Position numbers and translations under genes: made by a program
In this document: piece by piece, positions 19,320-55,462 of the stretch
How positions within the stretch are numbered: position 1 is the first letter of the stretch
Layout: each line of letters starts with the position of its first letter
Virus record (IMG/VR): IMGVR_UViG_3300026512_000002
Location: 124,001 to 188,000 of that record
Direction: 5' to 3' (one strand)
Length of the DNA: 64,000 nucleotides
The notes under the pieces: model-generated
What the model saw: only the letters and a program-made list of their open reading frames with translations
Database searches by the model: none
Told to the model about the DNA's origin: nothing

Positions 19320-21101
19320 TTATCTAACAATGCTAGGAGTGTCGATAAGAATTTGTCCTGTTGTTAATAGTAGTCCAATAATACTAAAAGCACTTTCTAA
19401 TATAACCAATTCAGTTAATGTTGGGTTAATAACTGACCAATCTTTATCTTCATATTGCTCCGTCACCATATTATAAACTATATTTTTTTCAATATACATT
19501 TTTTTAATCTCATCGATTCTTGCTAATAACTTATTCTTCACTGGTGCAACACCAATGATATTATCATTCTCAACATGATCGATTGTTATATCATATGCAC
19601 CACTGTTTTCCAACATCATTTTATACGGTGTTGTAAAAGCTACTAACAACCTATTTAGAATATCATTTAATAACTCGTTTCCATCGTTCTTACATTTATC
19701 TATTAAAATAGTCAACGCTTTAATCATACTCAAGTTACCACCAGGAACAATACCTGATTTAACAGCAGCTCTAGTAGCCAATGCTGCATCTTCTACAAGA
19801 TATTCTCTAGCTGTTTTATCTTCAGTTGTGTCACCACCAATATAAATAATAGCAACTTTACCATGTAACTTTTTATAACGTTCTTTTAAATTACCTAAAA
19901 CTTCAGTATAATCAACTTCTTTATCAGTTCTATTAACAATTCTATCTATCTCATCTTGTATTAAATAAAGTCGCTCATCCATTACTTTTTGTTCATAATC
20001 ACCATCGATAAATCTTGCCTGTTTATTAGTTATAACAATTTTTCTACATGTTCCAAATCTATTACTACTCCATGATAGGTTTTTATTATTAGTTATAGAT
20101 CTTAATGGTACTGCATTTAAATAAATTGCTAAATCTTCAAAAATTTCTTTATAGTTAGGTGTCGCTGTTGACATTCTAATTGCAGCTATAGGTAGATTAG
20201 GATTAATGTTTTTATTATGCATCAGAAAATCATTAGTAAAATCATGAGCAAAACCATTAGCTATAAAAATAATAGGTTTTCTTAACCCACCATCTGGTTC
20301 TGTTTGATCATTAATAATATTATATATAAACTTAGTATCCGCACCACTAAAAGTTCCATCATACATAATTATCAATGGTTCATCAAACTCTACGGTTTTT
20401 TTCTTAATATTTGTTATAAAAACAGGGTGTAAATAGCCCATATCTGCAACATAGCCTTCTTTAGACTCATAGTGTGTATCCTTACCTATTGATTTAGTTC
20501 CCATCAATGTAACGCCATTTCCCAATTCTTCATATATTTTACCAATAACATCACCTATTTCAACATCATTGTTTGCTGATATCGTAGCAACATTTTTAAT
20601 ATCGTCAACAGTTACAGTTGGTTTAGATATTTCATTCATAATAGTTTCAGAAATTTCATCTTTTATCTCATTAAGTATTGATAATAACTTGTGGGTCGGT
20701 GTAGTATGTTTTGTTCTCAAATCTTTTAAACTATTATACAATGTGTTGGCAATTATAATTGCAGATGTTGTGCCATCGCCAACTTTAGACATTTGTAAAA
20801 ATGATATTTGTTTAATAGTTTGTAAAACTTTAGCTTCGCCAGGGTTAGCATATTTAATATTGGTTAAGATAGTGTAACCATCTTTAGTAAAATATGTTCC
20901 TTTTAATGGGTCTCCAACCATAGTGTTTAACCCGAATGGTCCTAGTGAACTACCTACACTTGTTGTTATCTCATTAAGAGATTTTTCAATAATGTCTGTT
21001 GATTGTTTATAATCTAAAATATTTGTTGTTAAACCTTCTTCTTTTAGCATATTTTTGTTTCTATCTAAAAAATCTTGACTATATGGTACTGCGTATGTCA
21101 T
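19320..21101 (-). CDS. groEL: GroEL-like phage chaperonin
   Basis: SLGPFG, TKDGYT, VGDGTTSA, ATISANND, EDAALATRAA and VPGG motifs; start MTYAVPY at 21101 with GGAGGT RBS; no GGM tail. Confidence 0.93.
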   Translation of the reverse strand: MTYAVPYSQDFLDRNKNMLKEEGLTTNILDYKQSTDIIEKSLNEITTSVGSSLGPFGLNTMVGDPLKGTYFTKDGYTILTNIKYANPGEAKVLQTIKQISFLQMSKVGDGTTSAIIIANTLYNSLKDLRTKHTTPTHKLLSILNEIKDEISETIMNEISKPTVTVDDIKNVATISANNDVEIGDVIGKIYEELGNGVTLMGTKSIGKDTHYESKEGYVADMGYLHPVFITNIKKKTVEFDEPLIIMYDGTFSGADTKFIYNIINDQTEPDGGLRKPIIFIANGFAHDFTNDFLMHNKNINPNLPIAAIRMSTATPNYKEIFEDLAIYLNAVPLRSITNNKNLSWSSNRFGTCRKIVITNKQARFIDGDYEQKVMDERLYLIQDEIDRIVNRTDKEVDYTEVLGNLKERYKKLHGKVAIIYIGGDTTEDKTAREYLVEDAALATRAAVKSGIVPGGNLSMIKALTILIDKCKNDGNELLNDILNRLLVAFTTPYKMMLENSGAYDITIDHVENDNIIGVAPVKNKLLARIDEIKKMYIEKNIVYNMVTEQYEDKDWSVINPTLTELVILESAFSIIGLLLTTGQILIDTPSIVR

Positions 21102-21111
21102 AACACCTCCT

Positions 21112-21375
21112 TTAATTTTGTTCGACACCATTTAATAATAATTTTTCATCATCTTCTGTTTTTTCAGGATGCTGTATTCTCATAAACGATTTATACATGT
21201 TATCTAACATGAACATATCGTATTTGTACATAATATCATTCAGCGGTACAGTTTTATCCATACCTAAATAGAAACCCATAATCTCATCCATAGTTGAGGC
21301 ATACTCTTCATTAACAGCTTCGCTTTTCTCAACATATGTTGTATCTAGATTAAAAGGTTTCATCGATGACCCCAT
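21112..21375 (-). CDS. Small ORF overlapping the chaperone gene; probable frameshift extension
   Basis: In the +1 frame relative to 21350..22771 and overlapping its stop at TTT-TAA. Confidence 0.5.
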   Translation of the reverse strand: MGSSMKPFNLDTTYVEKSEAVNEEYASTMDEIMGFYLGMDKTVPLNDIMYKYDMFMLDNMYKSFMRIQHPEKTEDDEKLLLNGVEQN

Positions 21376-22771
21376 CGAGGAGGCCTAAGACATTAATCCA
21401 CCTATTGCCTATGACCTCCCCGCAACTCCCACATTTAATTTCAGGTGTACCTATATGTACATCATATTTATTAGAAAACTCTTCAATAGCTACATCAATT
21501 TTATCAATATCGGTGGTGGATGTGATATTATGATAATAATTGTAAATTTCTTCAATATTTGTATCAGCTATAAATTCTAAGTCGCCAGTATTTTTTAATA
21601 ATTCTATATTTGGGTATAGAATGTTTTTAGTCATCATTGCTATTTGTAATATATGTGCATAATCAGCATATTGTTCATCAGTTGCAACACTAAGTATTTC
21701 TAACCTATCTTGTAATGAAGGTATTCTGATTTCTGAAACAACACCATCAGTTAATAGTATTTTCTCAGTCTGTGCCATTGGAGAATCCTTTAATAATTTA
21801 ACGGTATCTTTCTCACTATATAATAATTCTCTAAATTTATCATATGTCTCATCATTTTTTATTTGTAATAATTCATCTACTTTAAGTGACATTTCAGTTT
21901 CATTACCACAAACTTGTTTAATTTTCTGACCTTTATTATCAGGATCATCTTTTTCAACAATACTGTTACATGTTACTGTTATAGGTAGTTTATCAACAAT
22001 ACTGTTAACAATAAGACCATGTACCAACATAGGTTCATCTAGAAAACTAGTGATCTTTAACCAATCTTCAAAAGAAGGTTTACCGTTTTTATAACCAACA
22101 ATATTACTATTTACAATAGCATCCCAAATGATTTTGTATAGTATTTCTTTTTGATGATGTTCTGATTCGCTTCTAGCTGATTTAATTGTTAATTTTTCAG
22201 CAAATGTTATAGGTCTCACATCAACAACATACCCAGAATTAAATAACACTATTTTTTTTGTTTTAGTCATATATTTAATTTTAGTTTCTTTTACTCTTGA
22301 TAATATTTGTTTAGCTTTATCATCAATAGGGTTTTTAATAACCATATTATCAAGATTTAGTTTTTGTGCTATTAATTTAGATAAATCATCATTGGTAAAA
22401 GATCTTTCCTTTTTTATAATTGGTTTTGGTTGCTGTACATTACTTACTTCTTTTAAAGGGTTCTTTTTTTCAACAGCATGTGCCACATTTCGTTGTACTG
22501 TGGTGTTTTGAATATTGGCAGTATCTGGTTCGGTTACATGTTCTATTTTGGTATCATTGTCAGTACTAACTCCTAATGGTGACTCAATCTCTTGTCCAGG
22601 TTGTTGTTCTATTGTTGTTTTAATTGAGTCCAATCTTTCCCTACTACTAATTTCACCGGTGTTTTGGGTCTGTTCTTGTCGTGTTAACACAGGTGTGTTG
22701 GTCTCAATCACCTTATCCCAACCACTTACGCTTGTTGTTTCTTTCGCATTGTTTTTTTTAATTTCGTCCAT
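21350..22771 (-). CDS. Tail/baseplate assembly chaperone with Zn fingers (T4 gp26/gp51-like)
   Basis: VDVRPITFAEK; VTC...VCGNE; EIRIPS..D; KCGSCG near the C-terminus; lies downstream of the gp25-like gene. Confidence 0.6.
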   Translation of the reverse strand: MDEIKKNNAKETTSVSGWDKVIETNTPVLTRQEQTQNTGEISSRERLDSIKTTIEQQPGQEIESPLGVSTDNDTKIEHVTEPDTANIQNTTVQRNVAHAVEKKNPLKEVSNVQQPKPIIKKERSFTNDDLSKLIAQKLNLDNMVIKNPIDDKAKQILSRVKETKIKYMTKTKKIVLFNSGYVVDVRPITFAEKLTIKSARSESEHHQKEILYKIIWDAIVNSNIVGYKNGKPSFEDWLKITSFLDEPMLVHGLIVNSIVDKLPITVTCNSIVEKDDPDNKGQKIKQVCGNETEMSLKVDELLQIKNDETYDKFRELLYSEKDTVKLLKDSPMAQTEKILLTDGVVSEIRIPSLQDRLEILSVATDEQYADYAHILQIAMMTKNILYPNIELLKNTGDLEFIADTNIEEIYNYYHNITSTTDIDKIDVAIEEFSNKYDVHIGTPEIKCGSCGEVIGNRWINVLGLLDGVIDETF

Positions 22772-22792: not shown

Positions 22793-23203
22793 TTATATTG
22801 TTTTATGTATAAATGCACTAATACCATTAGATATATTATTGTTGAATCTAAAATCAACCCCATATTGTGTAATATCATCTTTTACGTTATATACGATGCT
22901 CATTATAACCAAACCATTAATATTATCATCTTTTTTTATCGATATCGTAACTGTTCTCAATATTGGGATCTCATCCAAAAAAATATTAGAGATACTTCTA
23001 CTCAGTTCATCTAACACATCGTTTGTCAAGGTATTAAATTGATAATCTTGCAACCCTATACCGATAGAGCTAAACGGATATGCTTCACCAGCTAAAACTA
23101 TTATTATATGATACATTTGCACTAATGCTGTTTTAGCATGATTCAGAATGATACTGTTACCGTAATCATCTACATCTAGTGTCAATTCATTGTAAATATT
23201 CAT
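22793..23203 (-). CDS. Baseplate wedge / sheath-initiator protein (gp25-like)
   Basis: 136 aa; II...GEAYPF.SIGIGL.DYQF resembles the gp25 motif G.rpf.p.fG.gl..ylF. Confidence 0.65.
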   Translation of the reverse strand: MNIYNELTLDVDDYGNSIILNHAKTALVQMYHIIIVLAGEAYPFSSIGIGLQDYQFNTLTNDVLDELSRSISNIFLDEIPILRTVTISIKKDDNINGLVIMSIVYNVKDDITQYGVDFRFNNNISNGISAFIHKTI

Positions 23204-23215
23204 ACAACTCCATTA

Positions 23216-25636
23216 CTATACTATTAGAACATCAGGAGTGTCTAAAATACTATCTTTTTTAGGCACACTGTCAATATGACCAGCTATTATAAACTGTAAA
23301 TCATTATTATATATAATGTTATTTTGATATTTTATCTTCAAAATCTCAAATTTATGATATATGTCACCTATAGCTACATATATATGATCACTGGTTCTAT
23401 GTAATAAACTACCAGCATAATATGAGGCATAATTGTCCACACCATCCGATAATTTAAATATTATGATATCGCCAATACTGATGTCTTCTATGTTATCGAT
23501 TTTATTAAAATTGGTGGGTTTGTAGTATATGGTTCTATAATTACTAACTGACATTACTTGACCATATGTCAACACCATGTATATGTAGTATGGTGATAAC
23601 ATCCATGTTAACTGATATGAATCACGGATATCATTTCGAGTTAATGCTCCTGATTTCAACCATAACCAAACAATAATGATACTATCCCAACGTTTATTCA
23701 TATCAATTATATCTAAATTTTTTAAAATTGGTGTGATATCAGTTAGTTTATTTTGAAGCATACTGATACCTACGAATAGTTCTGGAATAGAACTTGTATG
23801 ATTTAAGTCTATTGGATATTTTGGATCCTCCCCTAATATGGGTGTTATCTCATTTTTTGATGTAGTCGATATTCTAATAGTACCACTATATATACTGATA
23901 TCAATATCAGTGTTATCATATAATATATTTTTACTCTCTAATATATCTTTATAGGCTACTAATGATGTACCGGTATTAATATAGTTTAAACCATAATTAG
24001 ATATAGTAATGTTTGATAGTTCAGGAATATTTTCTTTTAATTCATTTAATTTTACAAAAAGCCTATAATCTGATATTTTATTTATCTGATTCATTCTAAG
24101 GTTACTCATTAATAACATTGTAGGCTCATTATAACTGTTTGGGTTAAGTTGTAAATCCGATACTACTATTTGTTTATCAGCATTCTTGACAATTGTTTTA
24201 TTATCAATATAGTGTTGGTTAAATAACATTTCACGATGATCATATGTCAATTCTTCAACAACTTTTGTTAGTTTTAACATGACTCTTGGAATCAATGGTT
24301 TTATTTGATTAAATATATCATATAATAGAACCTTTTCAGTTATTTTATATTTACCATTATATAGTTTACCAATATTTTTATCATCATAATGAACATATAC
24401 ATGTTTGTTAAATGAAAACATATCCATATCAACATTTTCAACATTGATCAACATATTAAATGTTTTATCATTATATTCAGATATTATTCTAGTTTCAAAA
24501 AAAATACTATCATTTTGTTTCAATATTGTTTTTTTACGAAACGCTTTTTTACTAAGATTATATTCTTGTAGGTTTTTAGGTAAACGAACATCTACGACAT
24601 ATCCTTTATATGATACTTCTAAGCTATCACCATACAATTCTTTTGTAGAAGCTATTGTATTTATAATCTGAACACTATCTTCTGCTATAGGACAATATAT
24701 AGGTTTATTTGTTGTTGTCGTAACATCCCCTATTAAAAAACCTCTAGGGATTTTATATGTTGCAGCAGTATCCTTGCTCATTATTTCGAAATGGATATCA
24801 TAATCATCACGCCCTAATTCTTTTTGACTATCACATAATGTTAAATATTTACCATCAACATAATATTTATGTCCAAATATATATGTTCCTACATTGTTTT
24901 GTAGCTCGTTTAGCATATTATTAAAGTCACTATTATATAAATTTATAGTGGGTTGTCTGTTAGTGTTATCTACTGGTTGAGTTTTAATAACTAATTCGTT
25001 TAACTTATACGAACATTTTTTCACAACATCTTTAATAACCTCACCAACAGTAACAGCATTTCTATTAACAGAAAACGTTTTACGGTTATATAATAAAGCA
25101 TCTTTAACAACTAGCGATAAACTCAACATATAGCTATATGAATTATCGTCCACAATATTAGAAACTACAACATCTTGCTCATTGATAGGGTTTATGTTTA
25201 TCAAATCAACTAATACTAACTTAACATCATTATATGGTTTCTTTCCAAATATTCTAGTTGTACTATCAGAAGTTGTATTCAGGATATCATATATTGAACC
25301 ATACCCTATGGGTAAGTTTTGTTTATTTACAATATTTCGATCTATGTTTAGTTCAAAATATAAACTATCTTTCATAGTTGTATATGAACGATATACATCA
25401 TGTGCTATTTTATTAGACGTTCTGAGTTTAATATTAATAAGACTCATAAATGATGTACTATAATTATTAGTAATCTGAATTGAATCCAGATATTTTGTTA
25501 AATCAACATACTTGTTAGTATGTGGGTTAAAATATTTGAAACGTATATCATCGTTAGCAGCATATGCTTTTAATGATGATATATTTGGTATACTATTATT
25601 TATTTTAGAATAATCAATTAATTGTATTGGTTTCAT
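23216..25636 (-). CDS. Baseplate hub protein (gp27/gpD-like) with a degenerate C-terminal CHAP-like domain
   Basis: Hub-type TVGEVIKDVV...PVDNT...LNELQ..VGTY and LYNGKYKITEK; C-terminal W-D-S...W....SG and GDIIIF...; adjacent to the gp25-like gene. Confidence 0.55.
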   Translation of the reverse strand: MKPIQLIDYSKINNSIPNISSLKAYAANDDIRFKYFNPHTNKYVDLTKYLDSIQITNNYSTSFMSLINIKLRTSNKIAHDVYRSYTTMKDSLYFELNIDRNIVNKQNLPIGYGSIYDILNTTSDSTTRIFGKKPYNDVKLVLVDLININPINEQDVVVSNIVDDNSYSYMLSLSLVVKDALLYNRKTFSVNRNAVTVGEVIKDVVKKCSYKLNELVIKTQPVDNTNRQPTINLYNSDFNNMLNELQNNVGTYIFGHKYYVDGKYLTLCDSQKELGRDDYDIHFEIMSKDTAATYKIPRGFLIGDVTTTTNKPIYCPIAEDSVQIINTIASTKELYGDSLEVSYKGYVVDVRLPKNLQEYNLSKKAFRKKTILKQNDSIFFETRIISEYNDKTFNMLINVENVDMDMFSFNKHVYVHYDDKNIGKLYNGKYKITEKVLLYDIFNQIKPLIPRVMLKLTKVVEELTYDHREMLFNQHYIDNKTIVKNADKQIVVSDLQLNPNSYNEPTMLLMSNLRMNQINKISDYRLFVKLNELKENIPELSNITISNYGLNYINTGTSLVAYKDILESKNILYDNTDIDISIYSGTIRISTTSKNEITPILGEDPKYPIDLNHTSSIPELFVGISMLQNKLTDITPILKNLDIIDMNKRWDSIIIVWLWLKSGALTRNDIRDSYQLTWMLSPYYIYMVLTYGQVMSVSNYRTIYYKPTNFNKIDNIEDISIGDIIIFKLSDGVDNYASYYAGSLLHRTSDHIYVAIGDIYHKFEILKIKYQNNIIYNNDLQFIIAGHIDSVPKKDSILDTPDVLIV

Positions 25637-28780: not shown

Positions 28781-30382
28781 ATGATAATAGATATTAATGA
28801 AATTACGAAAATTGTTGATTACAATAACATTAAAGAAGTATATGATCCCATATACTTAAATATGGATATGATGCCTACAGCAGGTGGTGTGTTTTCATAT
28901 GAAATATTTGGTAAATCACCATATGATCGTAAAAATACTTTCGCATATATAAATTTAGGTAAAAAATATATGCAACCAGTGATATATACTATGTTAAAAG
29001 TTATGAAACGTAATATTGTAAAATGTTTAGATTCTACAGGTAAGTTTAATATAATTGATGGTGAAATGGTTAAAGATCCTAATGGTATTAGTGGTGTTGA
29101 TTTTGTATATAAAAATTGGAATAAGTTAAGATTCGAATATGGTGAAAATCCGAGTCCTGTTAAAAAAACTAAAGTTGACCTAATAAATAAAATGACACGA
29201 GATGAAATATTTACAGATAAGTGGTTGGTGATACCACCCTTCTATAGAGATTTAAACATGTCTGATGTTGCTAGTGGTAAATTATTCATAGATGATTTAA
29301 ATAAATATTACATAAAATTAATAAACCTAACACGTAATAATATCAACAACGCTACTATGGATTTGGATTTTGTATCTAATAAAGTTGATGCGTTAATCAA
29401 TGCACAATTACTTATAATATACCAATATTTTCAAGGTAAATTGGCGAAAAAGAAGGGTATTATAAAAGATAAACTTCTTAAAAAGGTTATTGATTATTCT
29501 AGTAGAGGTATTTTATCAGTAGCATCTAAGACTCATAACAAGCCAACGGATGTACCTGTCACATATGATACTACAGGATTACCATTACCACATGTAATAT
29601 CATTATATTTTCCCATATTAGTTTCATTAATACATGATGTTATACACGCTTATATCAAATCACATGTACATAAAATGTATGTTCTTAATTCTAAAAATGA
29701 ACTAGTGTCAAGAGATATATCAAATGATGAAATAATAAACATCGAAAACAATTACACTCACGATAAAATAGAATTGGTTCTTAAAAAACTTATTAGGGAT
29801 CATGATTTTAGGTTGAGCTATATAGAATTTAAGTATAATAAAAAAGATGTAGCATATCTAGCATATGATTTTAAAAACGACATTCTACCGGAGGAATCCC
29901 TAGTGAATGTTCAAGGAAAACCAATTAGACTTACATGGTTAGAATTATTATCAAAAGTTGCTCACGCTAACCTACTTCCTGGTAAAATGATAGTGTTGAC
30001 CAGATATCCTATGGAACATTTTCACAACATCCTATTTAGTAGAGTTAGAATGTTAACTGTTGATAATATAACTAATTTTGCAGGTTGTTTAACATTTCCA
30101 ATATTGGTGCGTGAAAAAGATGGTACAATAAATAAACACAATGTACAACATATGGATACTATACAAGTTGCATCTGCTTACTTAAAGGATATTGGTGGGG
30201 ACTTTGATGGTGACTCAGTTAGCGTAAGATCATTATATTCTAAAGAAGCTAATATCGAAGCTGAACAATTAATGAAAAAGAAAATAGGTATGCTCAATGT
30301 TGATGGTTCTGGTGCTAGACATGTTATAAACGAAGGTGTTCTAGGACTATATCTTTTAACTAAACGACAACCTAAAAAATAA
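28781..30382 (+). CDS. RNA polymerase beta' subunit, N-terminal/catalytic part (probable virion RNAP)
   Basis: GVFSYEIFG, LVIPPFYRD, DLNKYY, KKGII...LLKKVIDYSSRGIL, VLTRYP, catalytic GGDFDGD, EA..EA..LM and VLGLYLLT. Confidence 0.95.
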   Translation: MIIDINEITKIVDYNNIKEVYDPIYLNMDMMPTAGGVFSYEIFGKSPYDRKNTFAYINLGKKYMQPVIYTMLKVMKRNIVKCLDSTGKFNIIDGEMVKDPNGISGVDFVYKNWNKLRFEYGENPSPVKKTKVDLINKMTRDEIFTDKWLVIPPFYRDLNMSDVASGKLFIDDLNKYYIKLINLTRNNINNATMDLDFVSNKVDALINAQLLIIYQYFQGKLAKKKGIIKDKLLKKVIDYSSRGILSVASKTHNKPTDVPVTYDTTGLPLPHVISLYFPILVSLIHDVIHAYIKSHVHKMYVLNSKNELVSRDISNDEIINIENNYTHDKIELVLKKLIRDHDFRLSYIEFKYNKKDVAYLAYDFKNDILPEESLVNVQGKPIRLTWLELLSKVAHANLLPGKMIVLTRYPMEHFHNILFSRVRMLTVDNITNFAGCLTFPILVREKDGTINKHNVQHMDTIQVASAYLKDIGGDFDGDSVSVRSLYSKEANIEAEQLMKKKIGMLNVDGSGARHVINEGVLGLYLLTKRQPKK

Positions 30383-55326: not shown

Positions 55327-55347
55327 TATTTTATAATATTTAATAAA

Positions 55348-55400
55348 ATCGATAATAGTAGTGGATGATCATATATATGTCATCCGCTATTATTATCGAT
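55348..55400 (+). other. 21-bp intergenic RNA hairpin without a U-tract
   Basis: ATCGATAATAGTAGTGGATGA / TCATCCGCTATTATTATCGAT with two G-U pairs. Confidence 0.7.
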
Positions 55401-55462
55401 CATTACACTAATAAGATCATGTTAATTAACAATGGATTAAATAACTATTATAAGGACACATA

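Follow-up and report, generated by a model that had tools for sequence, protein, structure and literature searches.

The window analysed here, a stretch of 64,000 nucleotides corresponding to bases 124001-188000 of the 227.7-kb viral contig G000 from a hydrothermal vent metagenome, carries on its minus strand a large gene (21350..22771) for a protein of 473 amino acids (aa), which ends in ...LLDGVIDETF*. The 3' end of this gene is overlapped by a small open reading frame (ORF) on the same strand, called as an 87-aa form from ATG 21375 (21112..21375). The locus raises the question of whether these are two ordinary overlapping genes, or one gene whose product is made in two forms by ribosomes that change frame shortly before the stop codon. 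An earlier note on the same DNA had proposed the second, with a +1 slip on the UUU-UAA that ends the large gene.

The answer that we favour is that the locus is a recoding cassette in a baseplate-hub assembly gene resembling gp26/51 of phage T4. In the family of phage AR9 g231, a fraction of the ribosomes would change frame a few codons before the stop, at a Leu-Phe motif, and would then read the small ORF (AR9 g230 family) as a C-terminal extension of ~60-90 aa. This would give a short and a long form, as in lambda gpG/gpGT. Most members are predicted to shift -1 on C-UUU-UU, and a minority, including the closest relatives of the window, +1 on UUU followed by the rare codons CGG or CGA. If so, the earlier note was right to sense a recoding cassette, the strongest evidence for which comes from the relatives and not from TTT-TAA.

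The Leu-Phe motif across the family

The 473-aa protein is a member of the AR9 g231 family as judged by sequence similarity. It matches phrog_18873 (E 7.6e-31), and tblastn finds AR9, PBS1, BpSp and LPJP1 at E 1e-15 to 1e-18. An exhaustive profile search (phmmer) gave 169 homologs, all of which end within ~20 aa of the same alignment column. Four cysteines are conserved (C268, C288, C447 and C450), and a C-terminal CxxC...LL[F] tail is common to the family, the window having LLD instead of LLF. A search of viral contigs for related loci with the single protein, and another with alignment A4, added nothing new, while a word-indexed protein search yielded no more than 2 relatives of the large protein, both distant, and no relative of the 87-aa ORF. 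No homolog with the large and small proteins fused in frame was found among 150 representatives or in phage records.

The junction was compared in 22 non-redundant loci, taken from AR9, BpSp, the Staphylococcus phages PALS_2 and AH12, Yersinia phage phiR1-37, and metagenomic and IMG/VR contigs; MarsHill and SA1 were not counted, being near-identical to PALS_2 at the junction. In every locus the large gene is followed by a small ORF with the motif hh-x-LF-x-GK-h-S-xx-E-h (alignment A7). In all 22, moreover, the frame of the small ORF can be followed back without a stop into the 3'-terminal part of the large gene as far as the slippery site, covering the C-terminal Leu-Phe motif. When the intervening sequence is shuffled, 3-25% of trials leave this frame open, depending on the locus; multiplied over 19 loci, the probability comes to 1e-18. 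The overlap that the earlier note had expected homologs to keep is therefore present throughout, and the nearest relatives of the window share its +1 relation.

Start codons do not account for this arrangement in most loci. In eight of them the small domain is preceded by no ATG, GTG or TTG whatever, and in 18 of the 22 no start is preceded by a Shine-Dalgarno (SD) sequence, so that a small ORF lacking a start is the family default, which speaks against two ordinary genes; on the other side, SD-preceded starts do occur in some members (L012 and L030). The annotated starts of the published small ORFs are inconsistent and none has an SD: CTG in AR9, TTG inside the motif in PALS_2, MarsHill and phiR1-37, and an internal ATG that truncates the domain in BpSp, AH12 and SA1. 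In these phages (AR9, L001, 5759-6061; BpSp, L002, 5777-6070; the Staphylococcus jumbo phages, L014, L015, L016 and L017; phiR1-37, L018, 2313-2606) the frame is open back to a CUU-UUU run. The published small ORFs of AR9, BpSp, the Staphylococcus phages and phiR1-37 look like missed programmed -1 frameshifts.

The codons used at the motif are as striking as the open frame. Leu-Phe is near-invariant in the family, and the zero-frame tail that follows it is short (mostly 4-15 aa) and unconserved. In the -1 members with the motif, Leu is CTT in 14 of 14, followed by TTT or TTC for Phe, which gives C-UUU-UU; in the genome of the window CTT accounts for about 11% of the codons for Leu. All five +1 members that have the motif carry CGG or CGA directly after UUU, and the relatives L005, L004 and L012 carry UUU_CGG. 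The base before UUU is not U in three of these five, and a -1 slip is thereby blocked. One member, L026 (2484-2744), has LLN and no Phe; in its place a canonical -1 heptamer, U_UUA_AAG, lies one codon further on, and the -1 frame then reads through a GSGSD linker into the small domain. Strong structure was not evident 3' of the -1 sites or 5' of the +1 sites outside the clade of the window. In AR9-like members (L001, 5820-5850; L020, L021 and L007) the zero-frame stop lies inside a conserved string, UAAAAGG(U/A), which reads (L/V)-K-G in the -1 frame, resembles an SD, and is paired with the U-run of the shift site in the minimum-energy fold of AR9.

The simplest reading of these patterns is that programmed frameshifting throughout the family makes a short and a C-terminally extended form, and on the comparison of the loci we regard this as very probable. 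Our literature searches found no report of frameshifting in the g231/g230 pair, and nothing linking AR9, PBS1 or phiR1-37 with programmed frameshifting.

The GC-rich tail and its hairpin

The last ~25 codons of the large gene in the window have a GC content of 55%. As the earlier note had seen, this is exceptional in a genome with 27.9% GC: the 60-nt GC content peaks at 0.55 at 21370-21429, compared with a genome mean of 0.279 +/- 0.067, and only 23 regions in the 227.7 kb reach 0.50. Of the last 27 codons, 16 have G or C in the third position, where codon usage in the genome would give 5.1 for the same amino acids (z 6.4, the third highest of 199 ORFs). Several codons that each make up 2-8% of the codons for their own amino acid are stacked here, namely GGG (three times), GGC (twice), GTC (three times) and CTC (twice). 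Because the excess sits at synonymous sites, it is due to selection on the nucleotides and not on the protein; the third-position count rules out a by-product of Gly, Cys and Arg content. A foreign origin of the tail is unlikely, given that it aligns with homologs to the last residue.

The tail folds into a strong hairpin (21376..21422, minus strand). An outer stem of 10 bp pairs CGGGGAGGUC (21422-21413) with GGCCUCCUCG (21385-21376), and the inner AGGCA/UGUCU stem, which the earlier note had proposed, pairs 21410-21406 with 21392-21388; folding confirms both. Over 86 nt the fold reaches -28.1 kcal/mol, with a z of -2.1 relative to dinucleotide shuffles. In a 60-nt window the energy is -25.2 kcal/mol, where the genome mean is -6.0 +/- 3.6, which makes this about the 15th strongest locus in the genome. 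Two G-U pairs account for the strand specificity of the hairpin, with -28.4 kcal/mol in the mRNA (sense) strand and -18.4 in the opposite one. The second hairpin of the earlier note, UCGAUG-GGGU-CAUCGA (21363..21378, minus), with an SD-like GGGG in its loop, can be read from the sequence. It is weak, however, its pairing is in competition with the lower part of the main stem, and the minimum-energy fold contains it only in part, not as a whole.

The nearest relatives of the window, L005 and L006, are ~30% identical to it, and all three have the +1 relation. Each has a strong hairpin between the CxxC and the motif codons (z -4.1, -3.7 and -6.1 for the window, L005 and L006 respectively). The three tails align without gaps, with the stems in the same columns, and the covariation in homologs that the earlier note had suggested looking for was found in the same register. 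In the helix of 10 pairs, 29 of 30 cells are paired (96.7%) and 4 of the 10 pairs are compensatory, compared with at most 50% pairing when the register is slid; 2 of 500 shuffles were as good. The distance from the 3' edge of the helix is 0 nt to UUU_CGG in L005, 2 nt to GGG_G in the window and 0 nt to GGG_G in L006.

In the clade of the window the hairpin is formed by codons 4/5-7 with codons 17-19/20 after the CxxC, and ends exactly at the ancestral shift position. It is plausibly a 5' stimulator: with the shift codon in the P site it would still be partly inside the ribosome, and by zipping up behind it could pull the mRNA forward. This role is suggested by position and covariation, and it is an inference in the same way as shifting in this phage and the site at which it would occur.

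Candidate shift sites and starts in the window

The large gene ends with the codons GAA ACC TTT TAA, and the +1 frame (CCT TTT AAT CTA) runs into the small ORF, so the geometry described in the earlier note is correct. The +1 frame is open over 21112..21384 (minus), with a TAG just upstream at 21387-21385, and encodes a putative g230-family domain. The possible products of the small ORF are a free protein of 83-87 aa or a C-terminal extension of ~80 aa. The small ORF is clearly homologous to those of L005 and L006, and a profile comparison with the small domains of AR9-like phages gives P 2e-4 and a probability of 45%, in the expected register.

Between the opening of the +1 frame at 21384 and the stop there are two sites competent for +1 shifting, where perfect re-pairing is possible: GGG_G (21370..21373, minus) and UUU_UAA (21350..21355, minus). 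At the latter, tRNA-Phe on UUU_U (21355-21352) would re-pair on UUU 21354-21352, with AAU as the next codon. A parallel is found in L012, where UUU_CGG is directly followed by UUU_UAG. The TTT-TAA ending is nevertheless unique to the window, L005 having ACA-TAA and L006 ATA-TAG, and the conserved hairpin ends 20 nt upstream of TTT-TAA and 2 nt from GGG-G (21373-21370); both points count against the exact model of the earlier note. GGG_G is shared with L006 and is the positional homolog of UUU_CGG in L005 (alignment A6, columns 61-64). It occurs at 0.87 per 1000 codons in the genome, and is followed by GUC, which is 6% of Val codons. The ancestral UUU_CGG has been lost in the window (LLF to LLD). 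CGG is the rarest codon in G000, at 0.39 per 1000, and the dicodon UUU-CGG is absent from its ORFs of at least 150 codons.

The window thus retains the hairpin, the +1 relation and two sites for re-pairing, and we infer a fusion made by a +1 shift at GGG_G or UUU_UAA. That a functional +1 fusion is made in this phage seems to us slightly the better bet on this pattern. As to the site, a shift at UUU_UAA is a doubtful candidate taken by itself, and one at GGG_G is a little more doubtful still. The small ORF might in addition start independently at ATG 21363, and the two modes may coexist, as in YopN/TyeA.

Several observations weigh against this answer. TTT-TAA endings are ordinary (8 of 199 ORFs), as are overlaps in the same relative frame (7 of 147 same-strand junctions). 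Neither of the candidate shift sites is conserved beyond the window and L006. In the review PMC5009743 we found no case of GGG_G acting naturally as a +1 site in bacteria. The hairpin is missing from the +1 members outside the clade formed by the window, L005 and L006, and within that clade its covariation, being drawn from three sequences, is suggestive but falls short of conclusive. A UAA with U after it is a strong context for termination. The Phe codon has been lost in both the window and L006, which fits a switch to independent or coupled initiation, and L006 has an ATG 1 nt past the stop, though without an SD within 17 nt. Finally, the window has a plausible start of its own: ATG 21363 (21361..21363, minus; MKPFNLD...), which overlaps the upstream gene by 14 nt, is preceded at a spacing of 6 nt by the SD GGGGU (21373-21369), whose duplex energy of -5.9 kcal/mol equals the median of all starts in this genome. 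Among positions taken at random, 7% have -5 or less. A downstream ORF that lacks an initiation signal, as expected at a +1 site, is found in 18 of the 22 loci and not in the window. Since the TTT-TAA ending and the overlap are ordinary and the SD of ATG 21363 is typical, the null reading of two overlapping genes would win on the window alone.

Under that null reading the small ORF would be translated alone from ATG 21363, or by termination-reinitiation coupling over the 14-nt overlap, the ancestral frameshift having been lost with the Phe codon. The hairpin would then serve coupling, by blocking free entry of ribosomes, or mRNA stability. This has a substantial chance of being right, if a minority one. 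Overlaps of 1-20 nt are found at 14 of the 147 same-strand junctions, and an ATG is present at the junction in the window and L006, the members of the clade that lack UUU at the motif. The SD lies in a hairpin loop, and the accessibility of SD and AUG, at the 21st percentile, is not extreme; yet the region around ATG 21363 (-70 to +30) is the most structured of 198 start regions in the genome. The ATG alone is weak evidence, because the linkers of 4 of 15 other loci also contain ATGs, and L005, which has the same hairpin and reads ...UUC UUU CGG..., has no usable start near the junction, its only ATG being 56 nt upstream and buried in a stem. Plain initiation also leaves unexplained why GGG_G and the hairpin in L006 are placed at the old shift site. 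The same GGGG bases form both the GGG_G candidate and the SD of ATG 21363. Of the two starts raised in the earlier note as possible refutations, 21363 is therefore a live one, while 21375 (21373..21375, minus), the start chosen by the gene caller, has no SD (-2.4 kcal/mol).

The hairpin might alternatively be an element of the transcript unconnected with decoding, one that terminates or attenuates transcription, is processed by an RNase, or stabilises a 3' end before the chaperonin operon. It is indeed among the most stable local structures in the genome, and stands upstream of a GroEL-like gene in three related phages. On the other hand, it is not followed by a U-tract, the minus strand shows no terminator-like pattern, and Rfam gives no match, so that an intrinsic terminator or a known RNA family was rejected. 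The hairpin is moreover embedded in coding sequence, and its 3' edge falls at the same codon column in three diverged genomes, which fits a translational role better; in AR9-like members the gene order is kept in the absence of any such hairpin. We consider this explanation improbable.

The least likely possibility is that the two frames result from an assembly error, through an indel in a homopolymer (GGGG or TTTT), or are joined in the RNA by polymerase slippage that restores one frame. The candidate shift sites are indeed short homopolymers. Over the 151 nt of 21298-21448, however, an independent 2025 run shows the same sequence as the source contig (depth 21), without indels, which disposes of the assembly error; the two-frame layout recurs in 22 independent genomes in both -1 and +1 form; and runs of 3-5 bases are too short for known transcriptional slippage.

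The most far-reaching form of the preferred reading can be put in one statement, which as a whole is tentative and falls somewhat short of even: in AR9/PBS1-like jumbo phages and their metagenomic relatives a hub chaperone would be made in two forms by a shift at one Leu-Phe pair that has flipped between -1 and +1, driven in the clade of the window by a covarying 5' hairpin, with the site in the window itself moved to GGG_G or UUU_UAA.

Fold, gene order and relation to known systems

The AlphaFold model of the 473-aa protein has a confident core (residues ~130-473, pLDDT mostly above 85). In BFVD its first fold matches are AR9-like and phiKZ-like homologs, and the next (Foldseek) are T4-like proteins of ~250 aa called 'baseplate hub assembly protein/chaperone/hub subunit', these names being automatic annotations (E 1e-9 to 1e-5, probability 1.0, TM by target 0.55-0.66). 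The Pfam family T4_baseplate is the commonest weak match among members (3 of 25, best E 4.7e-4), although the window protein itself does not match PF12322 in a profile threshold test. A fold search of the PDB with the model gave nothing significant, the HK97 chaperone 2ob9 appearing only at E 0.9 and probability 0.25; the AlphaFold Swiss-Prot set gave no match, probably for want of phage entries there. Given the fold matches and the gp25-like gene just upstream, it is reasonable on the modelled structure to call the large gene a T4 gp26/51-like baseplate-hub assembly protein, as the earlier note had done.

The gene order agrees with this. On the minus strand an 806-aa ORF (23216-25636) comes first, followed by the gp25-like baseplate wedge gene (22793..23203, minus; 136 aa; BLASTP to AR9 g232, E 4e-7), whose homologs have weak matches to GPW_gp25 and which lies directly upstream of the 473-aa gene in conserved synteny. 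Directly downstream of the small ORF is a GroEL-like chaperonin (19320..21131, minus; phrog_5725, E 2e-102; Pfam Cpn60_TCP1). The order gp25-like gene, large gene, small ORF, chaperonin is thus found in the window, and the placement of the chaperonin is shared by AR9, BpSp, L005, L006, L009, L010 and L028. In most relatives whose contigs extend that far, the chaperonin gene is just 3' of the cassette, either directly or after one extra small ORF. A functional tie between the small domain and the chaperonin is conceivable.

Some observations concern the genome more widely. ARAGORN found no tRNA genes in the 227.7 kb of G000, which is unusual for a jumbo phage. Contigs of 151-153 nt from two runs of another 2025 study are identical to the window (21298-21448, 21492-21642 and 21618-21770), so that this phage, which is known only from metagenomes, or a near-identical relative occurs beyond the hydrothermal-vent source sample. 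The most stable local structures in G000 are long near-perfect hairpins, at -27 to -33 kcal/mol in 60 nt (window 55346-55405, plus strand; G000 29632-29691, 109006-109175 and 71086-71145), which are probably terminators or structured RNAs. GC content reaches 62% at G000 109040-109269, part of which is outside any ORF. The strongest outlier in codon usage is an ORF at the end of the contig, outside the window (G000 227322-227690, minus), with ~82% G/C in third positions.

Among known systems, the arrangement as a whole resembles lambda gpG/gpGT. There too a tail-morphogenesis chaperone is made in a short form and in a form extended by a small second domain, through a shift a few codons before the stop, and the arrangement, unlike the sequence, is conserved among phages that have diverged widely (PMC5009743). 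The differences are that the gpG fold has ~140 aa, whereas here we have a zinc-ribbon, T4 gp26/51-like hub assembly protein of 400-480 aa; that the lambda gene lies between the tube and tape-measure genes, and this one between gp25-like and GroEL-like genes; and that lambda uses a tandem X_XXY_YYZ heptamer, while here a single tRNA would slip on a Phe codon, in either direction, except in L026, L010 and BpSp. Membership of the lambda G/GT-type chaperones was rejected, the match to 2ob9 being weak and the neighbours different.

In YopN-TyeA, a shift near the 3' end fuses a gene to a small downstream protein that is also made alone, which matches the layout of the window. UUU_Ynn is unusually prone to +1 shifting in bacteria and is the likely site in YopN-TyeA, and the influenza PA-X cassette is UCC_UUU_CGU (PMC5009743). 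In these UUU_Y/UUU_CGN systems, which include E. coli argI, peptidyl-tRNA-Phe re-pairs from UUU to UUY in front of a slow A-site codon, as proposed here (PMC5009743; PMC4914553). They differ from the window in that the A-site codon is a rare sense codon rather than the stop UAA, and none has a conserved 5' hairpin.

For UUU_UAA the models are prfB (CUU_UGA_C) and the tsh tail genes of Listeria phages PSA, A118 and A500 (CCC_UGA, next to the stop), in which a stop codon in the A site promotes +1 slippage on the sense codon before it; in the Listeria examples, as here, the genes concerned are phage tail genes, and the hosts are low in GC (PMC5009743). prfB differs in having an SD-like sequence 3 nt upstream and a UGA stop: the window has GGGGU 13 nt upstream of UUU and UAA-U as its stop, and the site is not conserved in homologs. 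The analogy with prfB drawn in the earlier note does not hold, and a mechanism of that type was rejected on the SD spacing.

The closest analogue of the -1 branch is gene 10 of T7 and T3 (10A/10B), where tRNA-Phe shifts -1 at a non-canonical site ending in a U-run, close to the 3' end of a structural gene, and a short C-terminal extension is added (PMC5009743); this is a capsid protein, and the window is in the +1 branch. As for the hairpin, stimulation of +1 shifting by a 5' stem-loop has been described only for synthetic constructs, with the SARS-CoV 5' hairpin, and for T4 gene 60 it has been suggested that refolding of a 5' stem-loop pulls the mRNA forward (PMC5009743). As in our proposal, the ribosome still contains the 3' arm while the shift codon occupies the P site (PMC5009743). 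T4 gene 60, however, is a case of bypassing, and the SARS-CoV hairpin is an attenuator of -1 shifting, unlike the natural +1 candidate described here.

If the preferred reading is true, the window clade would offer a candidate for a natural 5' hairpin that stimulates +1 shifting, the 2016 review citing only synthetic constructs (PMC5009743). The family would allow -1 and +1 shifting to be compared at the same codon pair in one protein. The annotation of the gene would be corrected in AR9, PBS1, phiR1-37 and the Staphylococcus jumbo phages, where it now has CTG, TTG or truncated starts, and the AR9 and PBS1 members are directly testable in Bacillus subtilis. More generally, the rule that a tail chaperone is made in two forms by frameshifting would extend to the T4 gp26/51-like hub proteins of jumbo myoviruses, of which our literature searches found no previous case.

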